Source: Epithemia pelagica
Lineage: Eukaryota > Protista > Bacillariophyta
DNA length: 64,000 nt
NCBI GenBank assembly: GCA_946965045.2
Contig: OX337232.1
Coordinates: 558,001 to 622,000, forward strand
Direction of reading: 5' to 3'
Shown here: positions 57 through 42,423 of the stretch, in pieces
Position numbering within the stretch: position 1 is the first letter of the stretch
Layout of the letters: the number at the start of each line of letters is the position of its first letter
The notes under the pieces: generated by a model
The model's input: only the letters and a program-made list of their open reading frames with translations
Told to the model about the DNA's origin: nothing
The model's database searches: none
Made by a program: the position numbers and the translations under genes

Positions 57-229
57 GACATACCTCAATGTATTCGAGGTCAGAGGACGACGTATTGGTT
101 TCGTTTGCAGAGCTCATGATGTTGGATGCTGTTCGGAATGTTCGGAATTTTGAACAGCATTCAACACCATGAGCTCTCCAAACGAAACCAACCCGTCGCC
201 TTCTGCTCTGGAATACGTTGAGGTATGTC
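57..229. repeat. Inverted duplication of family-A exon 1 (78-nt arms 57-134 / 152-229, 17-nt spacer)
   Basis: The arms align without gaps, 11 mismatches in 78 nt by hand. The left arm reads MSSANETNTSSSDLEYIE|gtatgtc on the minus strand and is not followed by the conserved intron. Confidence 0.9.
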
Positions 230-731
230 ATTTCTGATCATTGATTGAAGAAAACTGACAAATGGTTATATCCCGCATCATGCTCTTCTGGATGAAACGG
301 GTGGAAGGTGGGAACGGATTCAGTGCAATATATTCTTGCTGTCGAACCTGGCGGGAATTGGGAAGAGGGAACCACTGCTGAGAACAGTTGACAATCGCAC
401 GGAATGGAGCTGCACCTGTCTCTCCAATATCTTTTCCAATTTCTCTCACCCGGCTTTTGTCTTGCTGCAATCGACACAGAAGCAAATGATGCAATGCATC
501 AAGGAATCCAAACAGGCGTCATGGCCGTTTGGCCCCATTGCCAAGGGTTCCAGCACACTTGCTTGTGCCCATTTTGCAGTAGCGAAGGCTCATCATCACA
601 TCGGAAATGCTCATGACAAAATTTCGAATTCCATGGTATCGTCCTCCTGGATTGCCGGCGGCGCGCTCGTGTTGTCCTCTTTAATTGCGGGGGGCGCCAT
701 TGTGGCATCCAGATTCATTGGTCGTAGCTAA
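169..731 (+). CDS. Small tail-anchored protein, family A copy 1 (exons 169-222, 480-731; 101 aa)
   Basis: ATG at 169, exon 1 MSSPNETNPSPSALEYVE, donor GTATGT at 223, acceptor ...acacAG at 478-479, phase-0 join to KQMMQCIKESKQASWPFG...; C-terminal hydrophobic helix WIAGGALVLSSLIAGGAIVA followed by SRFIGRS*. The same structure recurs in four paralogs in this window. Confidence 0.75.
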
Positions 732-828
732 GTTCTAATGACAGAGGGGAACGAACTGGAATCCCGGTGGAATCTCCGGTTCCCATCTGCCACTAGTACT
801 TAGCGGCGACCAAATAAACTGGATGCCA
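703..828. repeat. Inverted duplication spanning the stop codon of family-A copy 1 (arms about 703-752 / 779-828)
   Basis: tggcatccagattcattggtcgtagctaagttctaatgacagaggggaac against the reverse complement of 779-828: 9 mismatches in 50 nt. The inverted piece resembles the 3' ends of the paralogs at 37071-37130 and 41746-41800. Confidence 0.85.
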
Positions 829-859
829 TGCATCCCTTTGGCTGCTGCTGCTGGAGTCG

Positions 860-1140
860 CCACACGTTCCAGTCCCATCCGTTATTCGTGCAGCATAGAC
901 GACGATGATGACGACGACGGCAAAAAGAATCTTGCCGCCACCATTTTGACGACGACGACAGTCGACGATCCATAAACCGAGAGTAGCACCTGCGGTCGTT
1001 GCTGCGCCGGCGGCTGTGTCGCTCCTTTCTCCTTCTCTACTCCTTGGTGGTAAGGCATGTCATGGAGAAAGGAAACTGCCCAATGGTTCTATCTTGTGAT
1101 TCCGTCCATTCTTTTTGTCGAACCTGGCGGGACTGGAAAC
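860..1140 (+). pseudogene. Family-B (degenerate paralog) 5' segment and truncated intron
   Basis: Similar to the minus-strand segments at 29330-29720, 36230-36720 and 40820-41300. Contains g|gcatgtcatggagaaaggaaactg, which aligns with the family-A donor g|gtatgtcattgatgaagaaaactg. Breaks off at about 1140. Confidence 0.6.
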
Positions 1141-1359
1141 GAACCCTTGTCATATTGTAGAAACGGGGTGGAAGGGTGCCAACATTCCGTTCATTTGCTA
1201 TGAGGCGCAGCTACCCGACCCGATATAGTTGAGACGGGAAAGGAATAGTTCCAACTCGCTTCGTCCGTCGACATGAAAAGCAGTTCTAGTTTTCAAGATT
1301 TTGACTATTGATCATTCTTACTCTACTGGTGTATCCGTGAAATCTTTACGAGATTGACG

Positions 1360-3087: not shown

Positions 3088-3111
3088 GTTCCAATAAATC
3101 GTGCAAGTCCA

Positions 3112-7209: not shown

Positions 7210-7271
<62 letters not shown>

Positions 7272-9220: not shown

Positions 9221-9252
9221 TGGTATCCTGATTGAGATTCGGGCATCATAAC

Positions 9253-9968
9253 AGTTGAAGGTGGGTAAAAAGCTAACTCTAGACGATAGGGTTAGATACA
9301 GTAGTTTCTCTAGGTCAACCTATATGCACAATAGACGATGGGGCCCTCACCTTCTATCAGCGTAATAGGTCGACTTCTCCGTTACAAAGCAAGTTTGGTT
9401 ATCAAACTGGATGTTTATAAAGAAGTGAGATTAAACTAAAGATTGTGTTTTTCATCTTGAGATGGTTTGGCTCTTCTCGGATCGTTCGGCCATCATCCCC
9501 CAAAATCTAGTCGTACATGAGGAACGTATTCCTTACTTCAGTGGACAAGTACTATGGAGCTACGATTAGGGACTAATAGAACTTGTTCTACTCCATAGAG
9601 GAATGTGTTCCATCTTGGGTTGGATCTCCTGTTGATGAAGATCAAGTTCTATTCTCGAGGATCACGTTCTTTTCTCGATCCTCGATTTATGTAGCCCTTA
9701 CTTCCGAGTGTAGCTCGTCCAGCGTACATCTCTTCCGAATAGTAGAGGGCATAGTTATTCTTATTCACAAATTCCTGTTGCGGGTCCATCTGTCCGTTCA
9801 ACGGCCTACTTCTATTTAAGTACACGTAATGAATCTTAGATACACGTCAAGGTTTTGTGTCACAGACAGCGGTTTGTAACAGATGTCTCAAACCTGAACG
9901 ATAAGCTTGGTGTGCTAGCTGGACTAGTTGATCGGATACAGACGTTGTAGAATAGCTATGTCTTAACT
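9253..9968 (-). repeat. 3' LTR (716 bp)
   Basis: Nearly identical to 18859-19574 (four substitutions seen by eye); termini AGTT...AACT. Confidence 0.95.
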
Positions 9969-10041: not shown

Positions 10042-11136
10042 TTACCATCCTTGATTAAGTTTTTGGCAACGTTCGAATAGGTCACGTGCTTGACACTTTG
10101 TAAAGTAATCAGCTCGTTGTTCTTCTGTGCTCACCATGCTGACCTTAGTTCCTCCTGGGTGATCGCCAACATGTTCCCAAAAGAAATGAAGGTAGGTGTT
10201 GAAATGTTTTCTTCTAGGCGTCAACCTTTGCTTCGTTGCAAGATAGAAGGCACCAGAATTATCTTCGAATACCTCTGAGTAGATTGTAGGCTTTTCGAAT
10301 GGAAGGTCCAGATTAGTCAATAGCTCCTCTACTACACGTCGGGTAGCTATGACGCTACGCATGGCTTGTGAGAGGGCATGGTACTCGGCTTGGAGAGTAC
10401 TTAGGGCTACTGACGACTGAAGCTGGGAACGCCAAATTAAAGGGCACCCAGAAAGACTCAGAATATATCCTGTGCGGGATTTGGCGCTTATAGGATTATC
10501 TTGTGGTTCTCGTCCGTGTAGACCGGCGAAATCGGCATCTACATAACAATCCAACTTAAAGTCTTTAGTAGGGGTGAAAATCGTCCCCTTGTCTTTAGTA
10601 CGCACTAGGTATCGGACTATAGTTTTGATTGCTGCTGCGTGAGACTTCTTCGGAGCTGTACTAAATCTTGCTACTTGACTAACTGCAAAGGCTATGTCGG
10701 GTCGCGTGTTAGTGGCCAGGTACAGTAGCATGCCGACAATGGACCTGTATTGCCATTTTTCTTGCATAGGTTCACCATCTGGATCACTTCCGAGTGCCAG
10801 TTGTGTGGCTGGTGTCCAGTTGGGCTTACAGTCTTGTAGTCCTGTAGCTTTGATTATTTTGTTGATCAGGCCCTTTTGGGTCATTGTAATTGACTTGGTC
10901 TTTTCGTCATGTACAAAATTGATGCCTAAGTAATCAGTGAAGTTTCCTTCTTTTTGCAAAGATAGTCCTTTCTCTTTCAGCCGTTCAATAAGGTCGTCTA
11001 CAAGTTTCATTGTAGGGGCACATTCACCACAGTCATCTACCCAGAGAAAGATAATTATGTCTTTCTTGTACAGTAGACATTTATCATGCTTACTCATTTG
11101 GAAACCATCTTCCAATAGGGCCTTTACTAGGTGATC
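10042..11136 (-). pseudogene. Copia RT C-terminal half and RNase H, cut off from pol by an in-frame TAG
   Basis: LW*DHLVKALLEDGF continues in frame across the stop at 11137-11139; motifs FLWVDD, YVDADFAG, STLQAEY, EDNSGA. Confidence 0.9.
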
Positions 11137-14100
11137 CTACCAAAGTCTAGGTGCGGATGAGAGTCCGTATAGACTCTTAAGAAGCCTGAGGCACATAGTT
11201 CCAGGTGATAATGATCTGAAGCCTCTTGGAAGGTGAATCCAGACAGGTTCATGGAGTGTTGCTTGCACGAATGCATTGTTGAAATCGATGCAAGCAAGCT
11301 CCCATCCTAGAAATAGACTAAGGACAAGCACTATTCGAATTGTGCTCCAATTGACAACAGGAGAGTAATTTTCTTCTTCGGTTTCCTGTAGGTCTCCTCG
11401 TACACAGTACCTAGCTTTGTATTTTCGTATCTCTCCATCTGGAGAGCGCTTTCTTTTAAAGACCCATGTTCCAGGTAGGATTCTTGTAGTTGCCTCGGAT
11501 TTCGGCACTTCCGTCCATGTTCCTTTCCCTTCTAGTTCCCTAATCTCATTTTCGGCCGCTTCTTTCCACCTATCTATGTCGTTATCTCGCATTGCTTCGT
11601 CATAGCTCAATGTGTCCGGGTCGGAAATCGACGCTTTCATCATTGAAAGCAGATCGTTAGGCTGATAGGACGGAGCTAGAGAGGCTAGGTTAGCATCCTG
11701 TACATAGCGTTGCGGTGGACAGATAGTTCGTCCGGAGCGTCGGCTGGTTCTGAAAGAACTAGGTGGAGTCGGTTCCGGAGGAGGTTGTTCCCTCTTAGGA
11801 GTGACGGATTTTAAGGGGGTCATAACAGGGGGTGAAGGAGGATCCTGCTCTGCGATTGGCGTTAAGACGGTGTTCTCCCTCTGAGGAAGGGGCGCTGCAA
11901 CAGGGGTGTGTGGAACTCCCTCTGAAGGCAGTGTCGGTTCCGCTACGGGAGCAGAGTGAGAAGAAACAGGAGGCAAAGTGGGAGGAGTGGGTATGGGTAA
12001 AGGATCGTCGGGAATATGTCGATCCATGGATTGATGGATATGATCCAATCGATTTTCATATTTGGATCGATGAACCTCATTAGTTGCCGTAGGCGATTCC
12101 ATATTTTCTTCTGTTTCGTCTTCAGTATATTGATATCGAGATTCTCCGAATAATTGGTCCCATTCAGTACTAGTGAAATCTGGAACATCCTCAACGGAAG
12201 TGGCTATTGTAGAAAACCAATCATCGAATACCACATGGAATTGCGGTGTGATATATCCTGTAGAAGGGTTTAAAACTAAAGGTACAGTTGTTGCGTGTCG
12301 ATTACTCAAGCCCATTAGTATACACCGTGTGGAACGTGGCTTCCACCTAGGTAGCTTCTTTCCATCTGACATAGATTTGTCCAGTACGTAGACAGGGCAG
12401 CCCCACACGTGTAAGTCGTGGAACTTTCGCTGCTCCCATCTAGTGCTAGTGAATAAATCATGTGGGCTTATTCCGGTGGCGGTGTTAGGGACATGGTTAC
12501 ATAAGAAGGTAGCATGGGACACAGCCATGGGCCATAGTGAGAGATCAGCCATTTCTGGCCAATGTATAGCGGTGTGTAGCATCATGGTGCGCGCTATAGA
12601 CATAATTGTTTGTATGGCCCGCTCGGCTATACCGGCGTGATGATGAGCCCCTACTCCAGCAAAGCGGTATGTTTGAGCAAAAGTTTGTAGGGACTCTGTA
12701 TATTTGGCAGAGGTGAATGCCGATCCATTATCGGTTAGATACTGAGAGGGCATAACTCCAACGTCTCTACAAAATAACTCGAAGGAATTTTTAACGTGTA
12801 GAGTTTCATGAGTATTTAAGTGGCTCTGAAAGCCAATCCAGGTGTAACCCGAAGCGTGGTCTACGAATATTGCTCCACCCATATACATATCTTTAGACGT
12901 GGATGAACCCCGAGTATTAAATCTTCTTCCCTTAGTAGAGCATACGAAATGATCGACACTGACACATTGTCCAGGATACAAATTTTCTGCTTTTGTTATC
13001 CCCTTGCGATCCTTCACAATGGAACTTGTGGTTCCAGGTGATGGTCTTCGCTTTTGTTTGCCATATTGACAGGCTGCACAAAGAGGTAAGTTCGTGAGAG
13101 TGGATGCTTTGATGTGGAGTCGACGCTTGTGTTCACTGGTTGCAAGCACTCCGGTTCTCATAACGAATTGAACTTTTCGAAACGACAGGTGGCCGAAGCG
13201 ATTGTGCCAACGTACCAATTCTTGTTGCGCTTCGCTTAAATTCATGTTGTGCTGTGATGTTTCTGAAATGATGAAGCTGAGAGCGTGTGCGCTTTTCTTT
13301 ACTTCTTTGTGGTCGTACCCATACGACATGGGCAGGTTGTTGGACGGATTGATGAGAATTGTGATTTGCGTTCGTTTCTTGTCACCGGGCATTCCTGTAA
13401 GCACCATTGTCTTTCCATCTTGGATGATTTTCTCACCGTCGTATGTTTGGAGTAGACTTTGTGTTGACAGGAGTCTTGCGTTGGTCTTTGGCACAAGAAA
13501 GGCAGGGAGTTTGAGCCGTCTGAGCTTCCCTTCAGTGTCGAGCACAGACCACAAGACGAAACCTCGGCCCGTTGCCTTCATCCTGTTGGCGATTCCTTTT
13601 ACATTGAAGTTTGGCAAGGGCTGGATTGTTCCGATGAAGTCTTGAGTCTGGTTTGTGATCAAGATGCTGGCTCCGCTGTCCCAGATAATTGGATAGGATG
13701 CATTGTGTGGCATGGCGCTTCGTAAAGCGAGAGGATCCTGAAGGCAAGCTTGGAGTCCAGCTTGTGTAATTTGATCCCATTGGTGGTGTGGTGTGCTCCC
13801 CAAGGTCCTGAAGACATCGCAGAGTGTGGGTCCCTCAAGGCACGCTGCAAGAGCAAACATTTCTCGTTCCCTTGCAGATCGTGTGTTCCTGAAGATGTCG
13901 ACAGGATTTGTCGACGGGCGGTTATTAGAGTTCCTATTCCGATGATGGTTCATCGGGTTCGATGGATGGTTGGCGCGATGGGGGTTCTGATAGCGGTCCA
14001 TGGGTGTGGTACAGTATACCTCTTGTGGGTTGCGTCGTTTCTTGGAATGGATTCGTTGTTGACGAAGTCGTTGTTGTAAGGGTTGACGGTTAACCCGTGT

Positions 14101-17100
14101 CAGTCGAGTCCGCATTTGTGCTCGCTTGGTGACTGGAGCAGGGTGAATTGGTCGGAAAACGGATTTGCGTTTGGGACCGGCTCGTCGAGGGGACAAAGGT
14201 TGGTGTTCTCCCTCTTTCGAGCGATTTGCCCTGCCAGAAAGCAACAATTTACCAACAGACACAACAATCAAACGAAGGCAGTCGAAGAGAACACGGCCAT
14301 TAAGGATGGATCCAACAATGTTGCACCAGAAGGTGTGGAAGAGAAGCGTGTTCCCAAACAAAGGGGTTTGAGCTTGGCGACGTGGGTGGAGATTGACTCG
14401 GAAATGGTTGACAGTGGGTGGGCGCTGTGGCTGGGGTGAGAATAAAGAACGGATAGGGGCAGTGTGTGCCACGCTAGGCGATTCCCAGGGTGCAACCATG
14501 AAGGCAGCCAACCAACAGCACAACCAGGTGAAGAAAGCAGGTTGGCACGATGGGTGAATAAGAACACTCCAAACAAGGGCAGACCCGCCGTAGGTCAAAT
14601 CTCGGATTCCCAAGTACAGATGGGTCATTCCCGACCAAATAGACTTAAAACCTGAAATAGTTGCATTGTTTGCATGTTCCAGAGGGTGTGGAACAGGTAG
14701 GATCCAAAGGATACTGGATAGGACCACAAGAAGGGTCGTGAAGCTAGCCGCAAACATGTGCCAAGGGAAAGCAGGAATTGTGGTGGTCTCACCCTGCGTT
14801 TGTACCGACCCGACAGGCGCAGTGTGGTTGCTTGCACGTGTAGGGCCACGCGTATCTCCGGGCGTGGTGTCCGAGAGAGTACTATAAGGTGCATAGTTCA
14901 TTTCGAACTGATCGAAATCCGGAAAGTCTTTGCTAGGGTCACGAGGCGTCTGTGATTGTGATGGATAGACTGTACTGCTAGATCCATCAGAACGGACACG
15001 ATCAGGGCAGACCGGCGTCGGGATGTCAGGAGCAAGGTCGCCGGCCGCTAAGTTCCAAGCAAATTCGTGAATGAGAGTCAAAGGCAGACTCCGATTGGAA
15101 TAGGGTGATCCTTCAACCTGTTCACGTTCATGAGTGTAAGTCCATAGTTCTTTAACAAGCTCGCCTTGGTTGTGTAGCTTGATTTCCAGCTCTCCACGTG
15201 TGGCTGGATCAGACTCACGGTTGAATGCAAGACGTGTTGTCACTAATTCCTCAGTCGCGTTGGTTATGAGGACGTCCATCTTGTCTGGATCTTGGTCAAA
15301 CTCGTGCTTCGCCAGTACATTATGGATCACAGTAATACTGTGGGGGACACACGTGAGGTATTGGATGATACTGTCACAGAGTGAGACAAAAGGGGACTCG
15401 TTGTTCTCGTCGATCTCATCTTCACTTTCCAAATTTTCGTTTGCATCAGTCATCTCTTCGTCGTCGGAGCTCGAGTCCGAGTCAGCAATCTCAATGAGTG
15501 CCATCTTGGCATAGTATTGCGCAAAGGGATTGATACGTGGGTAAGTGATATCTGTTTCGTTTGTTGTGTGAGAAGCGTCAGTGGGAACGTATTGTTCTCC
15601 AAGATTGCTTGTGTCGACAAACGACGTCGAGGAGAAGGATCGTTCTCCATCCGCTGTGTCAGCCATGTCTTCTGCTTGCTGTTCCAAAGTCTCACATGCC
15701 TTGCTTCTTGAACTGAGATTTACAGAGGGCGGATCTGAGATATTGACTGGTGACGGCGTGGTGTTGCTTTGATTGAGAAGGGCAACAAATTGTGCATGGT
15801 ATCCTCGTTCAATTGGTCGATGTTCCATGATGCGAGCCCGAAGAAGGCAAGGTGGCGGATCGGATTGAATCTCGAGTCCAGGCCAGACAGGAGCTGGATT
15901 TGGGTGGTGTGGGATCCTCGTACCATCCAAATACCATCCAAGGTACCATTCTTCGTTCTTTACTCTTTGGTAAGCCTGTGCGATGGTAAGTTCCGGCTCT
16001 TGGTGTTGCAGAGCGTAAACGGTGTACTGCGCTCTCTCATAACGCATTCCATCTCGTCTTGCTTTTGCTGCTTCTTCCTCTATGGAGATCCGTGGATCTG
16101 TTGCAGGAGGACGCAGTCCTGGTTGAAAGCTTCTTGACCATTCTTCCAAAGTTCTCACAGAAGGACGAGGTTGGAGATTGAGTCGAGGAGGTGAAGTGTG
16201 GTCCATCTGGATAGGTGAGATATCTGGTTGCATTGCTGCAGGTTTCCTATCCTCTTGTTCCTCATCACTTGCAATCTCTCCTCTCTGCAAGTTCTTGAGA
16301 GGGGTCATTGAGATATTGTCATCGCTCAAAACCGAGCTGTCCTGTGTTGTATCGAGGATCGAGCCCATTGTTGTGTTGTGGGAACGCATATGTGTGTCGT
16401 CACTGCCGAGGTTGAGTTGAGAGCTGTCAAAGCTCGCTTCGTGTGCAGCTGTGTTTGCTTCAACAGTTTGGATGGCCATGCTTAGATCCGTGTCCATATT
16501 TTGGTTCTTGTTTGATGTGTCATACCAGGAGTTGATGTCCTCCCATTCGTCAAAATACAATGTATTTGCTTCTGCTTCTGTCTCACTATCACACCTCTTT
16601 TCACAGCAATGACGACGTACAAGAGGTGGTAGAGAAGAGAAGGACTCATCGGATGCAACAATTGACTCTCCAGACCCAACAATCAACCCCAGAGGAGTTC
16701 CTTCCTCTGTTTTCCGTTCTTCGGTGATGTGGTCCACACAACAATTTGTTTCTTCTTGGTTCTGTGGAGGATCCTTATTTGAATGGGAGGACCATTCCAG
16801 AGAGGACGTGTCTGCCGAGTGGTGATCAAAGTTGGGATTGTTGACTGGGTGCTGAATCATGTTGGAAGAATTGGAGGTTCCGTGTACTTCCATGAAGTCG
16901 CATTGCATGACAAAGGCGCACAAGTCGAAGTCCTGTGTATTGGTATATCCTTTGTCGTCTTCTTCAAGAGACATGCAATCTGGAAGATCTTTCCAGTCGT
17001 TGGTATTGCAGTCTTGGTCATTACAAAGTACACAACAATCAAACTCTGTTTTCCAAGCGGACACATCAAATTCGAGCTTGTGGGCTCGGGATTCCTTGGT

Positions 17101-25482: not shown

Positions 25483-26376
25483 TTATCGGTAATAATCGTC
25501 ATCCTTCTTGCCGCTGTCCTTCTTGCCGCTGTCCTTCTTGCCACTGTCCTTCTTGCCACTATCGTCTTTGTCGCCCTTCTCCTTCTTGCCCGACTTCTTG
25601 TCCTTCTTGTCGCTGTAGTCGCTATCATCGTATCCCTTGCCCTTACCCTTGGAAGGTGGTTCAGGTTCATATCCCTTGCCCTTACCCTTGGCAGGAGGTT
25701 CCGGTTCGTATCCCTTGCCCTTACCCTTGGCAGGAGGTTCGGTGTATCCTTTTCCTTTGCCCTTGGCTGGAGGTTCGTATCCCTTTCCTTTGCCCTTGGT
25801 GGGTGGCTCGGTGTATCCTTTTCCTTTGCCCTTGGCTGGAACCTCGGTCTCATATCCTTTACCCTTGCCCTTGGTAGGAGGTTCGGTGTATCCCTTGCCC
25901 TTTCCTTTAGCAGGTGCCTCGGTTTCATATCCCTTGCCCTTTCCTTTGCCCTTGGCAGGAGCTTCAGTTTCATATCCCTTGCCTTTTCCTTTGCCCTTGG
26001 CAGGAGCTTCAGTTTCGTATCCCTTGCCCTTACCCTTGGCAGGCGGTTCTGGTTCGTATCCCTTGCCCTTACCCTTGGCAGGAGGTTCTTCCATCTCGTA
26101 TCCCTTGCCCTTCATCATCATCTTGCCAGATTCCTTCTTTCCTCGGCTGCTGCTATCATCGTATCCCTTGCCCTTGGCCGGCGGTTCCATTTCGTAGCCC
26201 TTGCCCTTGGTAGGTGGCTCGGTGTATCCCTTGCCTTTGCCCTTGGCCGGTGCCGGAGTGGGAAATTGGGGATGGGCCTTGAGATCACGAACATTCAAGT
26301 CAGTCGTAGAATCGGCCAATACACTGCTGCTGCTTAGGGCAAGCATGAAGGCGACGGAGGCAATGGAGTACTTCAT
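25483..26376 (-). CDS. Secreted Lys/Gly/Pro/Tyr repeat protein, paralog 2
   Basis: Signal peptide MKYSIASVAFMLALSSSSVLA, RDL, KGKGKGY units, shared block SSRGKKESGKMMM, C-terminal DSGKK x4 and KKDDDYYR*. Confidence 0.9.
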   Translation of the reverse strand: MKYSIASVAFMLALSSSSVLADSTTDLNVRDLKAHPQFPTPAPAKGKGKGYTEPPTKGKGYEMEPPAKGKGYDDSSSRGKKESGKMMMKGKGYEMEEPPAKGKGKGYEPEPPAKGKGKGYETEAPAKGKGKGKGYETEAPAKGKGKGKGYETEAPAKGKGKGYTEPPTKGKGKGYETEVPAKGKGKGYTEPPTKGKGKGYEPPAKGKGKGYTEPPAKGKGKGYEPEPPAKGKGKGYEPEPPSKGKGKGYDDSDYSDKKDKKSGKKEKGDKDDSGKKDSGKKDSGKKDSGKKDDDYYR

Positions 26377-27362: not shown

Positions 27363-28550
27363 TTACACGCTACTTGTTCTCGTTGTCGTCGTCGTTGTTG
27401 TTGTTGTTGGAACCGAATCCTCAAAATCCATGGTCCTTGTTGTCGAGTCACCGACGACCTCCTGCAATCGAGGCGGGTTCAAATCGGCCCAGCGTACGGT
27501 TCGATATTGACAATTGGCAAAACTGGATTGCAACATCCATTGCATGACGCCATGATGACACACAACGACAATATGCAGTGGTGATTGTGAATCGTTTTGC
27601 TGTGATTGTTGTGCTTGAAAGGCATTTTGCAATTTGTGGTACAAGCGTGTCATGCGATGGTCAAAGACGTCTTGCGGTTCTCCCGGACAGGCATAACGTT
27701 GTCGACGTCCCGTCGGTCGCCATTCAATATAGGAATCCAACGATTGGGGCGACCACCACCAACCACCCGACAAGTCGGTGCCTTGTTGTTGTGGTTCTTG
27801 TTCTTGTTGTGGACAACAGGCGTGAAAATCCACGAAGGGAAATTCCGGTTGCAAGTCGTTGACGGATCGTCCGACATCGGAAATGAGATAGAGACGTTCG
27901 GCCGCTTCGGGCCAGGCGACAATGGATGATTGGTTCGAGTTCTGGTTGTTATTGTTGTTCCATAAGAGGGAATGCAGGTGCGGATGCAACCCGTACGTAT
28001 ACGTTTGCAAGGCTCGTGTCAAGGGACTGACCACCACCAAATCGCACCGGGTCCACGGACTCTTGTCGACGTTGACGGCCACGGCTCGTTCGCGGGCCAT
28101 GCGATCGTTCAAGGCTTGGACTTGGTCCTGACCGCGTGGCGACAAGGGAGCATCGCGATACAGGGACAATGATGTGTCGTCGCCAAAGACATCGGTAAAG
28201 CCGGGCTGTCCAAAGGCCTTGCCACCCCTGGATCCACCCAAGTATTCATTCATGTAGGAACAGCCATGACGGACAAAGGTCACCAGACACTGGTCGTCGT
28301 TCAGTGGCGGTGTGGTGGTTTGAGTGGTTGTCCGGTGATGATTGTTGTTGGAATGGGACATTCCCACCGCCAAGGACGACCGCATGATACGAGACGAGGA
28401 TCGTACCGTAGTTCGTGGTGTTCGTGTCGTCGTCGTCGTTGGGACAAGTACCCACGACCATGCACCACGAGGCATGCTACCGAATCCAAGGAAAACCACA
28501 ACACCCAGGAGCACAAGATTCATCCTCGTCGTTGTCGTCGTCTTCGTCAT
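27363..28550 (-). CDS. Histidine phosphatase / phosphoglycerate-mutase family protein, probably plastid-targeted
   Basis: VTFVRHG catalytic motif, LVVVSPLTRALQT, AER, VVCHHG. N-terminal hydrophobic signal ending AWS-W followed by an S/T/R-rich transit-like segment. Confidence 0.85.
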   Translation of the reverse strand: MTKTTTTTRMNLVLLGVVVFLGFGSMPRGAWSWVLVPTTTTTRTPRTTVRSSSRIMRSSLAVGMSHSNNNHHRTTTQTTTPPLNDDQCLVTFVRHGCSYMNEYLGGSRGGKAFGQPGFTDVFGDDTSLSLYRDAPLSPRGQDQVQALNDRMARERAVAVNVDKSPWTRCDLVVVSPLTRALQTYTYGLHPHLHSLLWNNNNNQNSNQSSIVAWPEAAERLYLISDVGRSVNDLQPEFPFVDFHACCPQQEQEPQQQGTDLSGGWWWSPQSLDSYIEWRPTGRRQRYACPGEPQDVFDHRMTRLYHKLQNAFQAQQSQQNDSQSPLHIVVVCHHGVMQWMLQSSFANCQYRTVRWADLNPPRLQEVVGDSTTRTMDFEDSVPTTTTTTTTTRTSSV

Positions 28551-29039: not shown

Positions 29040-29720
29040 GGAGTGCCTCCTTCGCAGTTTAGTTACTCCTCCCTCGGTTCCATTGGACGAATGGACGAAA
29101 TCCATTGGCACCCTTCGACCCCGTTTCGTTTGGATCCAAAACAGTATGATGATGACAAGGGTTGGAATCATTGGGCAGTTTTTGTGTTCTTCATCGAGAG
29201 GGTTTTCAGTTCTCTCCAATGACGACAACAAGTTGTCATTGAAAACGTCGCACCAAACGGCCAATCCGACTGTTTGGATTCATGGATGCATTTGTGCATT
29301 TCATTCTACAATCGATTGAGAATGATTTGCTCCAGTGCATTGTTGACGAGTCAAAATTGGAGAGCCATGGTCGATTGTTCTCAGCAGCTCGTCCCTCGTT
29401 TCCACCATTCCCGCCAGGTTCGACAAGAAGGAGGGACGGAATCCGTTTCCACCTTTCACCGGTTTCATGCAAAAGAGCATGACGCAAGATAGATGGAACC
29501 ATGTGGCAGTTTCCTTTCTCCATGACATGCCTTGACACCATAGAGTAGGAGAAACGAGCGACACGCAGCAACGACCACAGGTGCTACTCTCGGTTTATGG
29601 ATCGTCGACTGTCGTTGTCGTTGTCGTGGTATCTGCTGCAAGAACAACGAATGATGGGACTGGAACAAGTGGCGACTCCAGCTGCAGCAGCCAATGCCGT
29701 GGCCCACCTCTCCTGCGGAA
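29040..29720 (-). pseudogene. Family-B degenerate paralog downstream of A copy 2
   Basis: GC-type donor gcatgt, conserved intron, acceptor ttgtAG then NEMHKCIHESKQSDWPFG, after which it decays. Confidence 0.6.
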
Positions 29721-30167
29721 CAACTAGTTTTGTGTGACTTGTTCCTAGAGCCGGAAGGATAGTGACATGGATGGGATAGTGACATGGATGGAACTGTTCT
29801 TTCCACAATCTATTATAATCCATTTGGTCACTCGTAGAGACAAAGTGTAGAACACATGCTATATTGAAGGGGTTTCTATTCTACCATGCCAAGAAGCTCA
29901 AACAAGCTCGAGAAGCATTGCGAACCACATCTTCTGCGAAAAAAAGTGGGTGTACATCGACTGAGTCGAACTCAGTCTCGTACAATCATTCCAAGTATCA
30001 TCAAATGGATCAGGGTTTCCTTTGTTGTCGAAAGCCGATACAGCGTAGTCGCCGGCGTGACCAACCATGTTGTACATGGGAATGGGAACGTCGACAGTTT
30101 CCAATCCAGTCAACCTCACATAACGGGAATCCCGGTGGAATCTCCAGTTCCCCTCTGTCACTAGTGC

Positions 30168-30779
30168 TTAGCGGCGACCATATGCAATGGCGAGGCTGAC
30201 AGCTACTGATGACGCAAAGAGTGTTCCGCCGGCAATCCAGGAGGACGTTACCATGGACTTAGATATATTGTCGGAGGACGTTACCATGGACTTAGATACA
30301 TTGTCGGAGGACGTTACCATGGACTTAGATATATTGTCCATAGACTTTGCGGTATTGTCGGTCGATTTTGCCAATGCCAAGTGGGCACAACTAAATGTGC
30401 TGGAACCCCTGGCAAAAGCGCCAAACGGCCATGACGTCTGTTTGGAATCTTCGATACACTGCATCATTTGTTTCTGTGTCGATTACAGCAAGACAAAGCC
30501 GGGTGAGAGACATTGGAAAAGATATTGGAGAGACAGGTGAAGCTCCATTCCCGGTGATTGTCAACTGTTCTCAGCAGTGGTTCCCTCTTCCTAATTCCTG
30601 CGAGGTTCGATAGGAAGAATGAACTGAATCCGTTTCCACCTTCCACCCACTTCATCCAGAAGATCATGATGCAGGATATAACCATTTGTCAGTTTTCTTC
30701 ATCAATGACATACCTCTAAGTGTTCTAAATTCGACGACTCGTTGAGAGTGTTATTGGTTTCGTTTGCAGAGCTGCTCAT
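30168..30779 (-). CDS. Small tail-anchored protein, family A copy 2 (exons 30779-30714, 30473-30168)
   Basis: Exon 1 MSSSANETNNTLNESSNLEHLE (66 nt), GTATGT donor, acacAG acceptor, 3 x 33-nt repeat (DNISKSMVTSS) at 30241-30339, TM helix and YGRR*. Confidence 0.78.
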
Positions 30780-31128: not shown

Positions 31129-33722
31129 TTACTCATAATAATCACTCTCATCGTAGTAGTTGCCGTGGTTGGATTGCAAAGAATCGTCGTAGAATTGCCC
31201 AGAATTGTCGTCATTTTGTATATCCCCTGTAGATGATGACGGATATGGAGACGACGGAGCACTGGACCGATGGGTGGGTTGACTACTACTAGTAGATGGC
31301 ATGGTATCTTTCGGAATGTCTTTGTACCCCATCTGCCGTAGCGCCTCTCGTAAGTTGGGACGATTGACCCAGACACGCTGTCGAAGGATCCATTCGCGAT
31401 ACGAAAGCGGAACTTCTTGCCATTTTAGTCCGGTGTGTTTTCCAAAGTCAAAAACATAGTCCGCGGCCAAAGACCTGTCGGATGGACGCGACGGGACGGT
31501 CCTATGGTGTTGTTGTTGGGAATGCGACTGTGACCGCATCCGGCTCTGAGACTGTTGTTTATCGTAATACTGAGCCATGTTTGGTCGCAGTGGTAGACTG
31601 AGGGATACTGGATGTGGTCTCGTTTCGGGCGGATGCTCATTCACGAAACCACGGTCCAACAGGGCTCGCCAGAGTGCTGGTCGTCCTTTCCATATGTTGG
31701 GGTTTTTGACCACGAATTGAATATAGTCAACGGGCACATCTTCCAAAGGTAACCCACGGTGCTTACCAAAATCAAACACATAGTGTTCTGGCCTCCGATG
31801 CGGTTGTTCGTCCTTTGGAGATTGCAATGGTTGAAAGATATGTTGAATTTGCGCCTGTTTGGACACGAGTGTTTTGGCCAGCCATTCGTCAAGGGTATTC
31901 GGAAAGACGTAATATTGAACTTGAACGCAATGAGGTTGTCCCACACGATGACATCGGTCTTCGGCTTGAACCATGACACCGGGAGACCAATCCAATTCCA
32001 AAAACACGACCCGTGAGGCGGCCGTCAAGGTGAGGCCCACTCCGGCGGCTCGGATGCCTCCCACAAAGACAGATACATGGGGGTCGTTTTGAAAACGTTG
32101 CACGGACTCCATCCGATCCTCCAAAGACATGCCACCCCGAACACAGACGGCTCGCTCTGGCCCAAAATATTTCATCAATCCCTCTATCAAATGAATGTGA
32201 TGACAAAAGACGACCACTTTGGGGGACGGATTTTGTTCCTTGTTATTACCATCAGCAGACTCGCGGGCCTCGGTCAAGGTATGTTCCAACAGCTCCACAG
32301 CTGGTTCCAGTTTTTGAAGCGCTGTTTCTCGTCGGACGCGAGCCAAGATACCCATCAAGCCTTGATCGGAAACTTCCCTGTGGTCACTTTCGTCGTCGCT
32401 CACAGTATAGTTTTGCAAGCATGACGCGGATACTCCAAGGTGGGATTCCAAATAGCTGAGTAAGTGGTGATCGGCCAAGGAACCAAACTCTTGCAAGTTG
32501 GTAGGATTTCTTTCTTCTTCTTCTTCTTCTTCTTCTTTTTCGTCTTGCAAATCAAAGTCCTCCTCCAATGCCCCGTCGGCCGTTGCTTTTGGTACGGCGA
32601 AAGGGGTTTCGTGTTCCAATCCCAAGAGGGCACGGATTCGTTGTCGTTCGCCATGGCCCGTTGTGGACAAGGATGATGTTGTTGTTGTTGTTGTTGTTGT
32701 GGATGTTGGCAGTAACAAGACACACGATCGTACCTTGGGTGGCAATTGTCTTAAGACATTCTCCTTGTGCCGTCGCAACATGATTGGTTGCATACGATCT
32801 CGTAATTCGGACAAGTTGGACGATCCCGAGGTATCCATGCGTACAAATGGTTTACCCTGACTGGATCGACCCATGACTTGTTTGGGATCGCAATAGCGTT
32901 CCGTAAATGCGGTAAAGGATTCGGAAAATTCAAACACTTGTTTGGTCCTGCGGTTGTTGGATGGATGGGACGAGGCATGGGAGGGCCATGGCGAGGAGGA
33001 GGATAACAATGGCTGGGATACCGGGTCGGACGTTGTTGGTTGGGTGGCAGTCTCCCTCGCAATGGCAGACAATAGGGGATAGAGTTCCTCGGGTCGATTC
33101 ATCATGGGTGTCCCGGTCAAAAGCCAAAGGTATCGAGAGGCAATGCCGGGATATTGGGAACTGTCATTGCCGAGAATAGCCTTGGTCCGTTGGGATGTTC
33201 GTGATTTTAGGTAATGTGCTTCATCGCAAATCAGGACATCATAGCACGTCGCTTTCGACGCTCCTGTGATTGGAACTTGTTCGTCGAAATCATCATGATC
33301 AATTTCGACGTCCTTGTCTTGCTCGTTTGTACTCCTCTTGTTGGTTTTCGTTTTCTTCTTGTTCTTCTTTTTTGTCACGGCATGGACATGTCCATTGGGT
33401 GTTTGAATGCGTGTTTTATATTTGTGACACAAGTCGTAATTGATCAATGTAATGGACACGGAGGTTGACCCCGCACTTGAGCTCGTGTGCTCTTGGTCTT
33501 GTTGTTGTTGTTGTTGTGTTTTCGAGGACGTGAGTGTCTGCAGCGTATACGGTACCGTCATCCATTGACTCAATTCACTTTGCCATACTCCCAAGACAGA
33601 TTTGGGACACACAATCAAGACATGCCAAACACGGCCGTCCTCCTCCTGTTCGAGTACCAGTTCATTCAAGGCTTGAATGGATTGCACCGTCTTGCCCAAG
33701 CCCATCTAAGAATGCCGACAAG

Positions 33723-33753
<31 letters not shown>

Positions 33754-35549: not shown

Positions 35550-36720
35550 CTGTATCCCTTGCTTCTCCCCGAGAGAATGACCTCCCACCCAACCGCCGCC
35601 GAAACGACCAAGGGCACCAAACGAGCGACCCAGTCGACGAAGCAACGACCACAGGTGCGACTCTCGGTATATATGGATCGTCGATTGTTGTCGTCGTCGT
35701 CGTCAAGTTTTGGCCGAACGATTCTTGTCGTCGTCGTCGTTGTTGTTTCTGCTGTTACACAGTTACACACGGTGTGTGGTTGTGGGTCGGCTCTCGGAGA
35801 GAAGGCGTGAAATGGATGGGATGCTGCACAGGATACAAGCAACACTCTGTCATTCTTGGTGTCGAACCAATCCCTCAAACCGTGGAATGGGTTTGTGTTT
35901 CGTCGTCGTGTGGCTCTCTAATGGACGGAATCCCTCTATACCCGTTTTGGGATCCTGAACCGTAGGACGACGAGGGATGGAACCACTTGGCACTTTTTTT
36001 CATCCAAGGGTTTTCACATTCCAAGGACGACGACAAGTTGTTGCCATTGTAAAGTCGATGGAGAGTCGGGTGCCGTCCCTAGGACAGCTTCGCCGCCCGG
36101 CTCCATTGACTTGGCAATGGCAAAGTGGGCACAAAATCCGCACTGCGAAAAGCTCGGGAAACTGCGGCAAAGGGCCAAGCCGATTGTTTCGATTCATTGA
36201 TGCATCACTTGTGCATTTCATTCTACAATCGATCGAGAATGATATGCTCCAGTGCATTAACGAGTCAAAAGTGGAGAGCCATGGTCGATTGTTCTCAGCT
36301 CTGTGGTTCCTCCCTCGTTTCAGTCCTGCCAGGTTCGACAAGAAGAAGAAGGGACGGAATCCGTTTCCGCCTTTCACCGGTTTCATCCAAAAGAGCATGA
36401 CGCAAGATAGATAGAACCATGTGGCAGTTCCCTTTCTCCATGACATGCCGTACCATCACCAAGGAGTAGTAGCAATTCGAGAAGGAGAAACGAGCGACAC
36501 AGCCGCCGCCGGCGCAGCAACGACCACAGATGCTATACTCTCGAGGTATATGGATCGTCGACTGTCGTCGTTATCGTCTCGTTTGGGTGGCGGCACGATT
36601 CCTGGTGTCGTCATTGTCGTTGTATCTGCTGCCAGACCCACCCATGGGACTGGAACGAGAGTGGCGACTCTAGCAGCAGCAGCAGCAGCCAAATGGATCC
36701 ATCCATCCCGTGTGGCCCAT
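35550..36720 (-). pseudogene. Family-B degenerate paralog (35990-36720) plus a partial second B 5' segment (35550-35990)
   Basis: GC donor; acceptor then NEMHK*CINESKQSAWPF with an in-frame TGA and a later frameshift. Confidence 0.6.
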
Positions 36721-37113
36721 CTACTGTCCTCAACAAGATGGAACTGTTCTTTCCACAATCTATTCAAATCCATTTGACCACTCATTGAGACAGGGTAAAA
36801 GACATGCTATATTGGAGGGGTTTACATTCGACAATGTCAAGAGGCTCAAACAAGCTCGAAAGCATTGCGAATCGCATCTTCTTTTCAAAAACTGGGTGTA
36901 CAGCGACTCAGTCCAACTCAGTTGAATACAATCATTCCAACTATCATCAAATGGATCAGGGTCTCCTCGGTTGTCCAAAAGCCGATACAGCGTAGTCGCC
37001 GGCGTGACCAACCATGTTATACATGGGAATGTGAACGTCCGCTGTTTCCAATCCACTCGATGCCACATGAGGGAATCCCGGTGGAATCTCCAGTTCCCCT
37101 CTGCCACTAGTTC

Positions 37114-37656
37114 TTAGCGGCGACCAATGAAAGTGGATAGCACAATGGCGACCCCCACAATTGCAGAGGACCACATGAGCGCATTCCCGAGAGCCTCGGC
37201 AGCGGAACGCATTTGATTCCCGAGAGCCTCGGCAGCGGAACGCATTTCTTTTCCGACTTGATTATGAGCTTTCGCAAATGCAAAATGGGAGCCAGCAATT
37301 GAGCTGGCGTGAGCGCCAAACGGCCCAGCCGATTGTTTCGATTCTTCAATCAATTTCTGCATTTCTGTCTGTATCGATTGCAGCAAGAAAAAAGCCGGTT
37401 CAGAGAGATTGGAAAAGATAACTCCGTTCCCTTTGATTGTCAACTGTTCTCAGCAGTGGTTCCCTCTTCCCAATTCCTGTTCGATAGGAAGAATGGACTG
37501 AATCCGTTTCCACTCTCCAACCACTCCATCCGCAAGATCATGACGAAGGATATCACCATTTGGCAGTTTTCTTCATCATTGACATACCTCTACTAGATCC
37601 GTCAAGTCCAATGACGACTCGTTCGGAGTGGTATTGGTTTCGTTGGAAGAGCTCAT
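37114..37656 (-). CDS. Small tail-anchored protein, family A copy 3 (exons 37656-37588, 37368-37114)
   Basis: Exon 1 MSSSNETNTTPNESSLDLTDLVE (69 nt), GTATGT donor, atacAG acceptor, 2 x 33-nt repeat (QMRSAAEALGN) at 37183-37248, TM helix and FIGRR*. Confidence 0.78.
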
Positions 37657-38908
37657 AGCGTTGGCTGCTGTTTGGAATTTTTGTGATAACAAAAAAATGA
37701 AGGTCTCTGTCCAATATCGGCAGCAATTATTGTGCGCGACTCATTCTCTACTCACTGACCGTGTTGCAACTTGCCACACTACCTCTGTCAGTTCCAAAAA
37801 GAATCTCACCATGGCGCTTTCTCTGTGCCGCAGCAAAAACCGGATGGATAGTAACATGGTTCGATCCCGGTTCGAATTTGGACGTCTCACCCATGAGGTA
37901 TATTGATACCTCCTTAAGGAGATGGATGTGTTCTTGTGGTGGGTGGATGGGATGCATATTACAACGATTTGCCATTCGTCGAACTAATCCAAACCCGTGG
38001 AATGGGACAGGTGTGGTTCGTGTGGTTGGTCTAAACATAGCCCGATGGCGTCCCACTCTGTCGGTTGTAACAAGAACTGGGAAAGGAGCAAATGACGACG
38101 ACTCGGCCAACAGCAGCAACAACAAGGAGCTTGCTATGGTGGTGGGAGGAGACGGACACGATTCTATTGAAGTGCTAGAATGGTCATATTCATTGCTTCA
38201 TCAAACGCATGATGCGAAACGCAAAACCAACAATTCTACCACAGGTCGAGTTCGAAAAATGCCCAATCATGAAAAAGAGTCACCGAAATCTGCGCTGCAG
38301 TTACATTCCATGTCATTGTCGACACCCCGTGAACAGCGCATCAACGCTATTCCACAATTAATTCCCAGCAAGCGTCAAAAGATGGAACCCAATTGAGGGG
38401 ATTCCTTGCGCACCACAGTGGCCTCCTGTCATCGACGAGCACAACAAAACAATTGACCGGAAGCAATCCATCATATGGCCCATCTCAGCATATAGTACAC
38501 AATGGTCAAGAGTTGTTCCAGGAGGACGACACGGAGAGGGTAATGGCATCGATAGAACTGGTTTACCATCCATTTTGATCTCTCCTAGAGAAACATGATG
38601 GAAAATATCCTACGGTGGAGGGCTTATATTCTACAAGGTTCCAAGTAGCTGGAGAAGCATTGCAAATCGCATCTTCTTTTCAAAAACTGGGTGTACATCG
38701 ACTGAGTCGGACTCAGTCGAATACAATTATTCCAAGTATCATCAAATGGATCAGGGTTTCCTCGGTTGTCCAAAAGCCGATACAGTGTAGTTGCCGGCGT
38801 GACCAATTATGTTGTACATGGGAATGGGAACGTCGACTGTTTCCAATCCAGTCGACGACACATGAGGGAATTCTTGGATGAATCTCCAGTTCCCCTCTGT
38901 CATTCAAC

Positions 38909-39537
38909 TTAGCGGCGACCAATGAAACTGGATGCCACAATGGTGACCCCCAAAATTGCAGAGGACAACACGAGCGCGCCGCCGGCAATCCATGAGGACG
39001 ATACCATGGAATTCGAGATTTTGTAGGAGGACGAAACCATGGAATTCGAGATTTTGTAGGAGGACGAAACCATGGAATTCGAGATTTTGTCATGAGCATT
39101 TCCGATGTGATTATGAGCCCTCGCCAGTGCAAAATGGGCACAAGCAAGTGTGTTGGAACCCCTGGCAATGGGGCCATACGGCCATGACGCCTGTTTGGAT
39201 TCCTTGATGCATTGCATCATTTCTTTCTGTGTCGATTGCAGCAAGACAAAAGCCGGGTGAGAGAAATTGGAAAAAGATATTGGAGAGACATGTGAAGCTC
39301 CGTTCCCTGTGATTGTCAACTGTTCTCAGCAGTGGTTCCCTCTTCCCAATTCCTGCGAGGTTCGATAGGAAGAATGGACTGAATCCGTTTCCACCTTCCA
39401 CCCACTCCATCCAGAAGATCATGACGAAGGATATAACCATTTGGCAGTTTTCCTAATCAATGGCATACCTCTACTAGATCCGTCAAGTCCAATGATGACT
39501 CGTTCGGAGTGGTATTGGTTTCGTTGGAAGAGCTCAT
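38909..39537 (-). CDS. Small tail-anchored protein, family A copy 4 (exons 39537-39469, 39226-38909)
   Basis: Exon 1 peptide identical to copy 3, GTATGC donor, acacAG acceptor, 3 x 33-nt repeat (KISNSMVSSSY) at about 38994-39092, TM helix and FIGRR*. Confidence 0.78.
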
Positions 39538-40129
39538 GGCGTTGGCTGCTGTTTGGAATTTGTGATAAAACAAAAAATGAAGGCCTATTATCGGCCGCGC
39601 AACCCGGATATGGAGCAATTGTTGTGTGCGACTCATTTTCTATTCACTGACCACGCTCGCGGGTGTTGCCACCACACCCAGTCAGAAAAAGAATCTCGAC
39701 CATGGCGCTCTTTCTGTGCCGCAGGATGGATTGTAACATGGTTCCATCCCGGTTCGAATTTGGACGTTTCACCAGTGAGGTTTATTGATATATCATGCTA
39801 AAGGAGAAGAAGAAGATGCACAATCTATATTCTTGCTTTCTCACAAAGTGTAGCAAATATTACAACCAACAACCACCACAACTGTTCTCCATGGACTGTG
39901 TGACGGTGGTGCAGGTGATGGTCCTTTGTTTTGGATGAATTATTCTGGAATGTTTTGTGGAAAATCTCCGTACTTTTCCGATTTCCCATTATTTCTTCTA
40001 CACGAACAATCCTACTCCTCCGTGTTGGCACAAAACATATTTATTCTTTTGTCGCTTTTGTCTTGTTCATCCTCCGCTTTCTAGCGCCTTGGTCCAACAA
40101 GTGGTGGGTCACATCCCGCCTTGATTCAT

Positions 40130-41300
40130 TTGACGACCATTACGGCGACCTTCTATACCCTTTGGATCAAGAACCGTATGACGACGAGGGATGGAACCAT
40201 TTGGCAGGTTTTTCATCCAGGGCTTTCACATTCCAAGGACGACAAGTTGTTGCCATCGTGAAAAGTCGATGGAGAGTCGGGTGCCGTCCCTATGACAGCT
40301 TCGCCACCCGACTCCATTGACTTGTCAATGGCAAAGTGGGCACCCGCACTGCGAAAAGCTCGGGAAACTGCGCCAAACAGGCAAGCCGATTGTTTTGATT
40401 CATTGATGCACATGTGCATTTCATTCTACAATCGATCGAGAATGATATGCTCAAGTGCATTGACGAGTCAAAATTGGAAAGCCATTGTCCATTGTTCTGA
40501 GCTGTGTGGTTCCTCCCTCTTTTCAGTTCCTGCCAGGTTCTACAACAAGAATAGACGACCGAATCCGTTGGCACCTTCTACCCCCCGTTTGGGGATCCAA
40601 AACAGTATGATGAAGAGGGATAGAACCATTTGGCAGGAATCTTCAGCAACCTCTAAAGATTTTTAATTCCAATGACAACAAGTTGCCATTGTAAAGTCGA
40701 TCGAGTCGGGTGCCAAAGCTCATTTAGACTCTATAATATGCTGGAGGCAGTTTGGGCCACCGCACAAAACGGCCAACCCGACTGTTTTGATTCTTTGATG
40801 CATTGGTGCATTTCATTCTACAATCGATCGAGAATGATATGCTCCAGTGCATTAACGAGTCAAAAGTGGAGAGCCATGGTCGATTGTTCTCAGCTCTGTG
40901 GTTCCTCCCTCGTTTCAGTCCTGCCAGGTTCGACAAGAAGAAGAAGGGACGGAATCCGTTTCCGCCTTTCACCGGTTTCATCCAAAAGAGCATGACGCAA
41001 GATAGATAGAACCATTTGTGAGTTTCCTTTCTCCATGACATGCCGTACCACCAAGGAGTAGTAGCTACTTGCGAAAGAGAAACGAGCGACACAGCCGCCG
41101 CCGCCGGCGCAGCAACGACCACAGGTGCTATACTCTTGGGGTGTATGGATCGTCGTTGTCGTCTCGTTTTGGTGGCGGCAAGATTCGTTGTGTCGTCATC
41201 ATTGTCGTTGTATCTGCTGCCAGACCCACCCATGGGACTGGAACGAGAGTGGCGACTCTAGCAGCAGCAGCCAAACGGATCCGTCCATCCCGGGTGGCCC
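40130..41300 (-). pseudogene. Two family-B degenerate paralogs in tandem (about 40130-40640 and 40690-41300)
   Basis: Exon-2 remnants NEMHMCINESKQSACLFGAVSRAFRSAGAHFA (no TM tail) and NEMHQCIKESKQSGWPF...SIL*. Confidence 0.6.
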
Positions 41301-41786
41301 ATCTACTCTCTTCAACAAACAAATAGTCCACAATGGTTTTGTGTGACTTGTTCTTAGAGCAGGACGACATGGAAAGGATAGTGACATGGATGGAAGTGCT
41401 CTTTCCACAATCTCATAAAATCCATTTGACCACTCATTGAGACATGGTGTAGAAGACATGCTATATTGGAGGGGTTTACATTCTACAATGCCCAGAGGCT
41501 CAAACAAGCTCGAAAGCATTGCGAATCGCATCGTCTTCTAAAAAACTGGGTGTACAGCGACTGAGTCCGACTCAGACAAATACAATCATTCCAAGTATCA
41601 TCAAACGGATCAGGGTTTCCTCGGTTGTCCAAAAGCCCATACAGTTTAGTTGCCGGCGTGGCTAACCATGTTGTACATGGGAATCCATGTTGTACATGGG
41701 AATGTGAACGTCGACTGTTTCCAATCCAGTCGACGACACATGAGGGAATCCCGGTGGAATCTCCACTTCCCCTCTGCCACTAGTAC

Positions 41787-42423
41787 TTAGCGGCGACCAT
41801 ATGCAACGGAGATGCTGACAGCTACTGATGACAAAAATAGTGCTCCCCCCACAATTGCAGAGGACCACACGAGCGCATTCCCGAGGCTCTTATGAGCCTC
41901 GGCAAAGGAACCCATTTGCTTTCCGACGTGATTGGGCGCATTCCCGAGAACCTTATGAGCCTCGGCAAAGGAACCCATTTGCTTTCCGAAGTGATTGGTT
42001 CCCGACGCCCTTATGAGCCTCGGCAGCGGAACCGATTTGATTTCCGAAGTTATAATGAGCCCTCGCAAATGCAAAATGGGCACAAGCAAGTGCGCCGGCA
42101 GCTCGGGAAAAATCGCGTAATTGTCTGGATTCGTTAATTAACTTGAACATTTCCTTCTGTATCAATCGTAGCAAGACAAAGTCCGGGTCAGAGAAGTTAG
42201 AAAAGATGTTGGGCAGCAAGACGAAGAATCATGGTTTGTGATTGTCAAGTGTTCTCAGCTGGGTCTCCATCTGTTCAATTCCTGCCACGTTCTGTACGCT
42301 TCCACCACACTGTGTAATGGACATATTTCATCCAAAAGAGGAGATGCAACATTGATCCACTTTCTCCAATCAATGCCATACCTCGAGCTCGTCCAAATCG
42401 GACGATGAGGTGTTTGGTGTCAT
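41787..42423 (-). pseudogene. Family A copy 5, frameshifted (exons 42423-42382, 42156-41787)
   Basis: Exon 1 MTPNTSSSDLDELE (42 nt) with intact splice sites; 63-nt repeat units at 41875 and 41938; the third unit is 5 nt short, which shifts the frame before the intact TM and YGRR* tail. Confidence 0.72.

Follow-up and report, generated by a model that had tools for sequence, protein, structure and literature searches.

The stretch of DNA analysed here, hereafter the window, comprises 64,000 nucleotides of contig OX337232.1 (C5:558001-622000) of the diatom Epithemia pelagica, and the genome searched consisted of 23 contigs with a total of 60.5 Mb. Five loci in the window, c1 to c5, hold a putative two-exon gene with a predicted small, helical product that carries a hydrophobic anchor at its C-terminus. 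The five loci are clearly true paralogs: in a self-BLAST of the window, c1 was 90.8% identical to c4 over 411 nt (E 2e-154), 84.7% to c2 (E 4e-112), 74.7% to c3 (E 8e-30) and 72.7% to c5 (E 1e-13). Their gene models are as follows, with a slash at the exon-intron junction.

169..222, plus strand: c1 exon 1, 18 codons, Ser/Asn/Thr-rich and acidic; open frame from ATG to GAG/GTATG
223..479, plus strand: c1 intron, 257 nt, GTATG...ACAG
480..731, plus strand: c1 exon 2, 83 codons and stop; head, short stalk, C-terminal anchor, GRS tail
30714..30779, minus strand: c2 exon 1, 22 codons
30474..30713, minus strand: c2 intron, 240 nt, 94% identical to the c4 intron
30168..30473, minus strand: c2 exon 2, 101 codons and stop; three 11-residue stalk repeats
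37588..37656, minus strand: c3 exon 1, 23 codons; a single synonymous difference from c4 exon 1
37369..37587, minus strand: c3 intron, 219 nt
37114..37368, minus strand: c3 exon 2, 84 codons and stop; Ala/Glu-type stalk
39469..39537, minus strand: c4 exon 1, 23 codons
39227..39468, minus strand: c4 intron, 242 nt
38909..39226, minus strand: c4 exon 2, 105 codons and stop; three 11-residue stalk repeats, 33-nt repeat at 38994-39090
42382..42453, minus strand: c5 exon 1, 24 codons from an upstream ATG
42157..42381, minus strand: c5 intron, 225 nt, more diverged than any other intron of the array
41787..42156, minus strand: c5 exon 2, broken; frame change near 41995, 63-nt repeat at 41873-42050

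Scripted models gave the same donor (GAG/GTATG), acceptor (ACAG/A) and phase (0) in all five copies, in agreement with the preliminary description of the window, which had proposed a shared two-exon plan. The exon 1 lengths for c1 to c5 were determined at 54, 66, 69, 69 and 72 nt (18-24 codons from the ATG). The first four are as described before, but the 42 nt formerly given for c5 corresponds to an internal ATG, the frame being open from 42453. The introns measure 257, 240, 219, 242 and 225 nt and contain stops in all frames. Exon 2 is open for 83-105 codons in c1 to c4, the four copies already described as intact. In c5, frameshifted near 41995, the original frame stops at 41953, and the anchor and the GRR stop are found in another frame that ends at 41787. 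Stalk repeats were also visible as a 33-nt tandem offset at 30240-30338 in c2 (self-BLAST) and a 33-nt repeat at 37183-37247 in c3. The database ORFs (open reading frames) P0001 and P0006 correspond to exon 2 of c1 and c3, respectively, each from an internal Met.

The exon 1 product is hydrophilic and acidic, with 31-55% Ser/Thr/Asn; its hydropathy averages -0.7 to -1.3, and its net charge lies between 0 and -5. Exon 2 starts with a conserved head (Cys, Ser-Lys, Trp, then Cys-Ala-His), followed by a stalk of in-frame repeats of 33, 42 or 63 nt (11, 14 or 21 residues), the number of which varies between copies, alleles and species. A single hydrophobic window is present at the C-terminus, Gly/Ala/Ser-rich and with a mean Kyte-Doolittle value of 1.6-2.2 for the best 19 residues. 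The anchor is followed by 2-7 residues with a net charge of +2 in c0-c4, L007 and L010, and by 24-35 residues after the anchor window in L034, L036, c7 and the proteins of Epithemia clementina (copies outside the window are introduced below). All elements of the product named in the preliminary description (head motif, helical stalk, C-terminal hydrophobic helix and GRR/GRS tail) were thus found. By hydropathy alone, neither a second hydrophobic segment nor an N-terminal signal peptide was detected, and head and stalk are polar. With a single helix within about 30 residues of the C-terminus, the products conform by hydropathy to the tail-anchor topology previously read from the hydrophobic helix and short basic tail. 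AlphaFold2 modelled the c4 exon-2 product (16 sequences) as all-helical, with one short and one long helix. The location formerly suggested, in mitochondrial or other organelle membranes, is pure inference; the moderate hydrophobicity of the anchor and the tail charge of +2 fit the rule for mitochondrial outer-membrane anchors, which is a non-specific rule.

A genome search with an exon-2 profile located about 25 loci of the family on C5, C6, C7 and C8, so that the five copies reported at first are an undercount, the more so as the window also holds degenerate relics, termed B. The c0 locus (L027, C5:531.7k) and L028 (C7:877k) are intact and have the same plan, L028 with an extended C-terminus. 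L007 (C6:3.79M) and L010 (C5:644k) represent an intact short form, whose head lacks the Trp-Pro-Phe-Gly part. L036 (C5:1.03M) and L034 (C5:1.53M) form a distant subfamily with a different exon 1, in which a GTATG...TAG phase-0 intron is retained, and L038 on C8 has lost its donor. Segmental duplications of more than 2.6 kb make up the dispersed pairs, and the intron and flank are the only parts in which copies on other chromosomes can be aligned to those in the window. A mobile intron (introner) or other transposable element was rejected as the identity of the repeated unit, all examined genomic intron matches being situated at family loci or relics. Between the two c0 haplotypes (L027 and L043), homology starts only 110 nt upstream of the ATG, with unrelated sequence beyond; if both alleles are expressed, the promoter would therefore be either compact or allele-specific.

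The support for the proposed spliced coding model is comparative. In 11 models, among them those of diverged copies on other chromosomes, the GT/AG sites and phase 0 are conserved. Among eight A-type copies, all five gap blocks in exon 1 are multiples of three, against three out of 15 in the intron, in line with the contrast between exon 1 lengths and intron indels from which the preliminary description had argued. For the pair L034/L036, the gaps are 12 and 42 nt in exon 2 and 6, 10, 1, 4 and 1 nt in the intron. Exon 2 of L034 has 148 open codons without a Met and therefore only the ATG of exon 1 can serve; an in-frame stop overlaps the acceptor AG. When random mutation of exon 2 of c1 and c4 was simulated to 20-30% divergence, the frame remained open in 5-22% of the trials per copy, and at least 10 diverged copies retain both exons open. 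The ratio of nonsynonymous to synonymous divergence (dN/dS) of the head (36 codons) is 0.15-0.5 in well-diverged pairs. The selection on a spliced protein previously claimed is not simple purifying selection, the ratio for the anchor and for close copies and alleles being about 1 or more.

Relatives outside the genome were found only in the same genus. A profile search of 1.84 billion proteins returned ORFs of the genome itself, proteins of E. clementina and two repeat-only matches, and a word-based protein search with c4, L034 and P0012 returned own-genome ORFs and E. clementina proteins only. Four exon-2 products matched no Pfam family at E up to 1, a PDB profile search gave designed coiled coils only (E 0.08 and 0.5), and a feature search of the ESM Atlas gave no usable match. 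This agrees with the earlier statement that no named family could be recognised. P0009 (1127 residues) and P0013 (369 residues) were rejected as relatives, as they matched through repeats only. P0009, from a 31-kb ENA contig, contains about 50 copies of an 11-residue Ala/Ser/His repeat, and the stalk profile matched it via this repeat alone.

Four hypothetical proteins of E. clementina, KAL7555655.1, KAL7571090.1, KAL7571087.1 and ACA910_006161 (P0012, P0014, P0018 and P0019), are homologs; pairwise comparisons with the E. clementina protein gave E-values of 1e-7 and 3e-6. They share the head motif, variable 11-residue stalk repeats and a C-terminal hydrophobic helix with basic tail, and their annotated gene has two exons with the intron at the same place and in the same phase. 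They differ in their low identity (22-30%), in a basic tail of 26 or more residues instead of 2-7, and in an intron of 132 nt instead of 219-269 nt, without visible similarity. The four copies are near-identical to one another, one being frameshifted at the anchor. The gene spans 537 nt for a coding sequence of 405 nt, with an exon 1 of 39 nt, a GT..AG intron of 132 nt and an exon 2 that begins seven codons ahead of the conserved Cys. The E. clementina annotation was made by BRAKER2 with RNA-seq hints, and the split from this species is dated at about 35 My ago (PMC12377750). Together with the 11 models, the in-frame exon 1 gaps and L034, the annotated intron of E. clementina supports the two-exon coding model on comparison. 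The family had been presented as hidden and possibly as an undescribed, lineage-specific expansion; relatives are indeed confined to Epithemia, but its E. clementina members were already annotated as hypothetical proteins.

The E. clementina members (L042 and L041 on contig JBGMNV010000082.1, L040 on contig 582) share a repeated block with a gene for 563 residues, which lies about 2.8 kb downstream of them. One contig carries at least two copies of this block, and a further copy is present on another. An Epithemia-only orthogroup, OG0000250, with members enriched in the diazoplast fraction has been reported (PMC12377750). The occurrence of the homologs in a short duplicated block resembles that of a candidate pair in the same paper, which is only a loose hint that the family may correspond to OG0000250.

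The exons of the family diverge more than its non-coding DNA. The intron and the 3' flank (about 400 nt) are 77-94% identical between copies, against mostly 37-82% for exon 1, head and anchor; for most pairs this difference is significant, at Fisher p values between 1e-3 and 1e-14. In pairs with c2 or c7, the synonymous divergence at codons for the same amino acid is 0.5-1.0, compared to an intron divergence of 0.06-0.2; the c1 intron, for instance, is 92% identical to that of c2, at a synonymous divergence of 0.63 in the exons of this pair. Between the c0 alleles, 11 of 387 coding sites are different, 10 of them with an amino-acid change, in addition to an in-frame indel of 33 nt, against 6 of 1145 non-coding sites, a coding difference about five times higher (p 6e-4). 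At several of the variant positions, the residue is one also present in other paralogs. For c1, the only differences between the haplotypes are seven clustered changes in the intron, which reproduce the c0 intron over about 40 nt; this patch is a gene-conversion tract. Mosaic copies were also observed: c3 and c4 have a near-identical exon 1 and different stalk types, and c0 combines a c1-like head with a c3-like stalk. The dN/dS near 1 in close pairs is not read as decay, because neutral decay would not speed the coding sequence above the introns. The ratio of 10 amino-acid changes to one silent change is not significant alone and is no formal proof of positive selection.

The conserved flanks and the B relics in the window are the following.

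29760..30165, minus strand: c2 3' flank, non-coding, 76-87% identity to flanks at eight other loci of the family
36737..37111, minus strand: c3 3' flank, conserved
38560..38906, minus strand: c4 3' flank, conserved
41389..41784, minus strand: c5 3' flank, conserved
29150..29760, minus strand: B relic after c2; intron-like 29306-29530 with GC for GT, truncated exon-2 start
36080..36780, minus strand: B relic after c3; intron-like 36223-36448, stop at codon 6
40700..41370, minus strand: B relic after c5; intron-like 40818-41043, frame open for 28 codons only
40100..40700, minus strand: second B relic after c5; intron-like 40426-40664, longer frame without anchor
754..1142, plus strand: downstream of c1, the stop/3'-flank junction as an inverted copy (754-812), followed by a B-like relic (832-1142)

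The 3' flank had 10 matches in the genome, nine of which at family loci. A coding function of the flank was ruled out, neither a common or conserved frame nor a three-base periodicity being present. The degenerate B relics, found downstream of c1, c2, c3 and c5, consist of an intron-like stretch, mostly with GC replacing GT at the donor, and an exon-2 start that soon closes. Directly after c1, which has no usual 400-nt flank, the inverted copy at 754-812 makes a tail-to-tail palindromic junction. On the opposite strand of the upstream parts of the relics (29560-29700, 36510-36690, 41105-41280 and 840-1010), a peptide-like frame recurs with Met-Asp-Arg-Arg, a Val run and Gly-Thr-Gly-Thr. The copies are frameshifted relative to one another, and the frame probably represents low-complexity GTC/GTT DNA.

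No RNA element emerged from the non-coding parts. Rfam gave no match on the window and on three loci, either at gathering score or at E up to 1, and RNAalifold on 13 introns returned no conserved fold (-0.38 kcal/mol, 10 pairs, one covarying). The start of the intron was also considered as a box C/D element, but this was rejected, since L007, L010 and the B relics do not retain the TGATGA. A 14-nt intron motif is common to the family and the distant L034/L036 subfamily, and was not found by eye in the E. clementina intron.

Ordinary genes are found at 31129-33705, at 27363-28550 and beside L044, coding for a SNF2-type helicase, a histidine-phosphatase-like protein and an M48 peptidase. Because such genes sit between and around the family copies, the array is interspersed and not a pure tandem block. 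Proteins neighbouring the c2-c5 array differ between haplotypes. Elsewhere in the window, two direct repeats of 733 bp (9238-9968 and 18843-19574), 98.9% identical, flank long minus-strand ORFs (10042-18649); the whole looks like a long terminal repeat retroelement of about 10.3 kb. Many staggered matches at 22784-23600 and 25596-26250 lie in and between two repeat-rich ORFs (22695-23702, minus strand, and 25266-26376), which look like genes with internal tandem repeats.

Based on these comparisons, the loci probably represent a real protein-coding multigene family of about 25 loci, restricted to Epithemia, whose products would be tail-anchored helical proteins with diversifying exons amid homogenised non-coding DNA. 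The proteins would be inserted after translation as tail-anchored proteins, with head and stalk on the cytosolic side, and would probably associate in pairs or bundles through the stalk and the small-residue anchor. Evolution of the family proceeded by gain and loss of stalk repeats and by short conversion tracts between paralogs, with the exons differing most; the protein diversity may be kept or driven, while conversion would homogenise the non-coding DNA. A number of points weigh against this interpretation. The spliced product is absent from the protein collections searched, all searches and folds having used exon 2 or the exons separately. The intron of E. clementina is in frame and free of stops, so that its annotation is supportive and no proof of splicing alone. 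The hydrophobicity of the anchor is only moderate, and the AlphaFold2 model has low confidence (predicted local distance difference test score, pLDDT, of 51). For the anchor, and in comparisons of close copies or alleles, dN/dS reaches about 1 or more, which is likewise predicted by decay. Finally, constraint on the non-coding DNA is a live alternative to selection for exon diversity as the source of the contrast between them.

One competing model is a single-exon gene that starts at the Met of codon 3 of exon 2. The apparent intron would then contain its promoter and 5' leader, and exon 1 would be at most an upstream ORF. This Met is present in all A-type copies, in the B relics and in the E. 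clementina genes, the database ORFs P0001, P0005 and P0006 begin with it, and a promoter role would account for the conservation of the intron; the absence of a spliced product from the collections also fits this model. Such a gene is nevertheless unlikely: exon 2 of L034 offers no Met and the first in L036 is at codon 46, too late to include the conserved head, while the GT stands exactly on a codon boundary and the AG in phase 0 in the 11 models, the exon 1 indels are all multiples of three with a conserved peptide, and the gene of E. clementina is annotated as spliced. We hold it for rather improbable that the non-coding DNA itself is the functional unit, as an intron or flank RNA or a regulatory element, with the exons a fast-drifting host frame like that of a small nucleolar RNA host gene. 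The intron and the 400-nt flank are the best conserved parts, even between chromosomes where the exons no longer align, and the 14-nt motif extends to L034/L036; against this, Rfam and the consensus fold of the introns were negative, the motif was not seen in the shorter E. clementina intron, open frames, in-frame indels and a head dN/dS below 1 favour a protein, and the visible conversion tract provides a neutral route to homogenised non-coding DNA.

A decaying repeat, made of pseudogenes or fragments of a mobile element with frames open by chance, would explain the dN/dS near 1 in close pairs and in the anchor, the broken copies (c5, L038 and the B relics) and the spread over four chromosomes. 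Decay would leave coding and non-coding DNA equally diverged, but the coding sequence actually changes several times faster; moreover, at least 10 diverged copies are open in both exons with in-frame indels only, flank and intron occur at family loci only and not as a high-copy element, the dispersed pairs are segmental duplications, and the architecture is shared with E. clementina after some 35 My of separation (PMC12377750). We therefore consider decay very unlikely. In a more far-reaching and doubtful version of the protein-coding model, the array would be a diversity-generating locus, in which selection maintains differences between copies and alleles in the exons of a cytosol-facing, membrane-anchored coiled-coil protein, and short conversions, possibly with the B relics as donors, shuffle variants and homogenise introns and flanks. 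As the family is restricted to a genus that houses a nitrogen-fixing endosymbiont, the proteins may then sit on the membrane around the endosymbiont, or they may face a pathogen.

Fis1 and OMP25 are small tail-anchored proteins of the mitochondrial outer membrane. Like tail-anchored proteins in general, the Epithemia products are small and without N-terminal signal, and their single hydrophobic helix stands at the very C-terminal end, followed by a short basic tail; they differ in having no sequence relationship to them and an anchor at the low end of hydrophobicity (1.6-2.2), with a topology that is predicted. CCDC90/DUF1640 proteins, with which a comparison had been suggested, are alike in overall cartoon (head, coiled-coil stalk and C-terminal anchor). 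The Epithemia family is much smaller, however, and the four exon-2 products gave no match to this or any other profile in Pfam at E up to 1, nor to PDB entries except designed coiled coils. The family is new as a family, within a known protein class.

Its evolutionary pattern is its most interesting feature. In the major histocompatibility complex (MHC), the peptide-binding exons are variable and the introns are homogenised. In venom toxin families, e.g. scorpion toxins, the exons coding for the mature toxin vary more than introns and leaders (PMC2651877). The Epithemia family resembles both in coding sequence that evolves faster than introns and flanks, in amino-acid changes that dominate between alleles, in conversion between paralogs and in tandem arrays with relics. 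It is unlike them in that its product is not secreted and is neither a toxin nor an immune receptor. To our knowledge, exon-over-intron variability with conversion and strongly different alleles, as in toxin and immune genes, has not been described in a diatom.

The loci also illustrate that ORF-based gene calls can miss short spliced genes, for which the databases here hold only ORFs cut at an internal start. For the biology of Epithemia, a model for hosts of nitrogen-fixing organelles, the result adds a genus-restricted family of about 25 small proteins predicted to be membrane-anchored. Genus-restricted families are natural candidates for lineage-specific biology and, if selection drives the diversity of the exons, this would point to an interaction partner.

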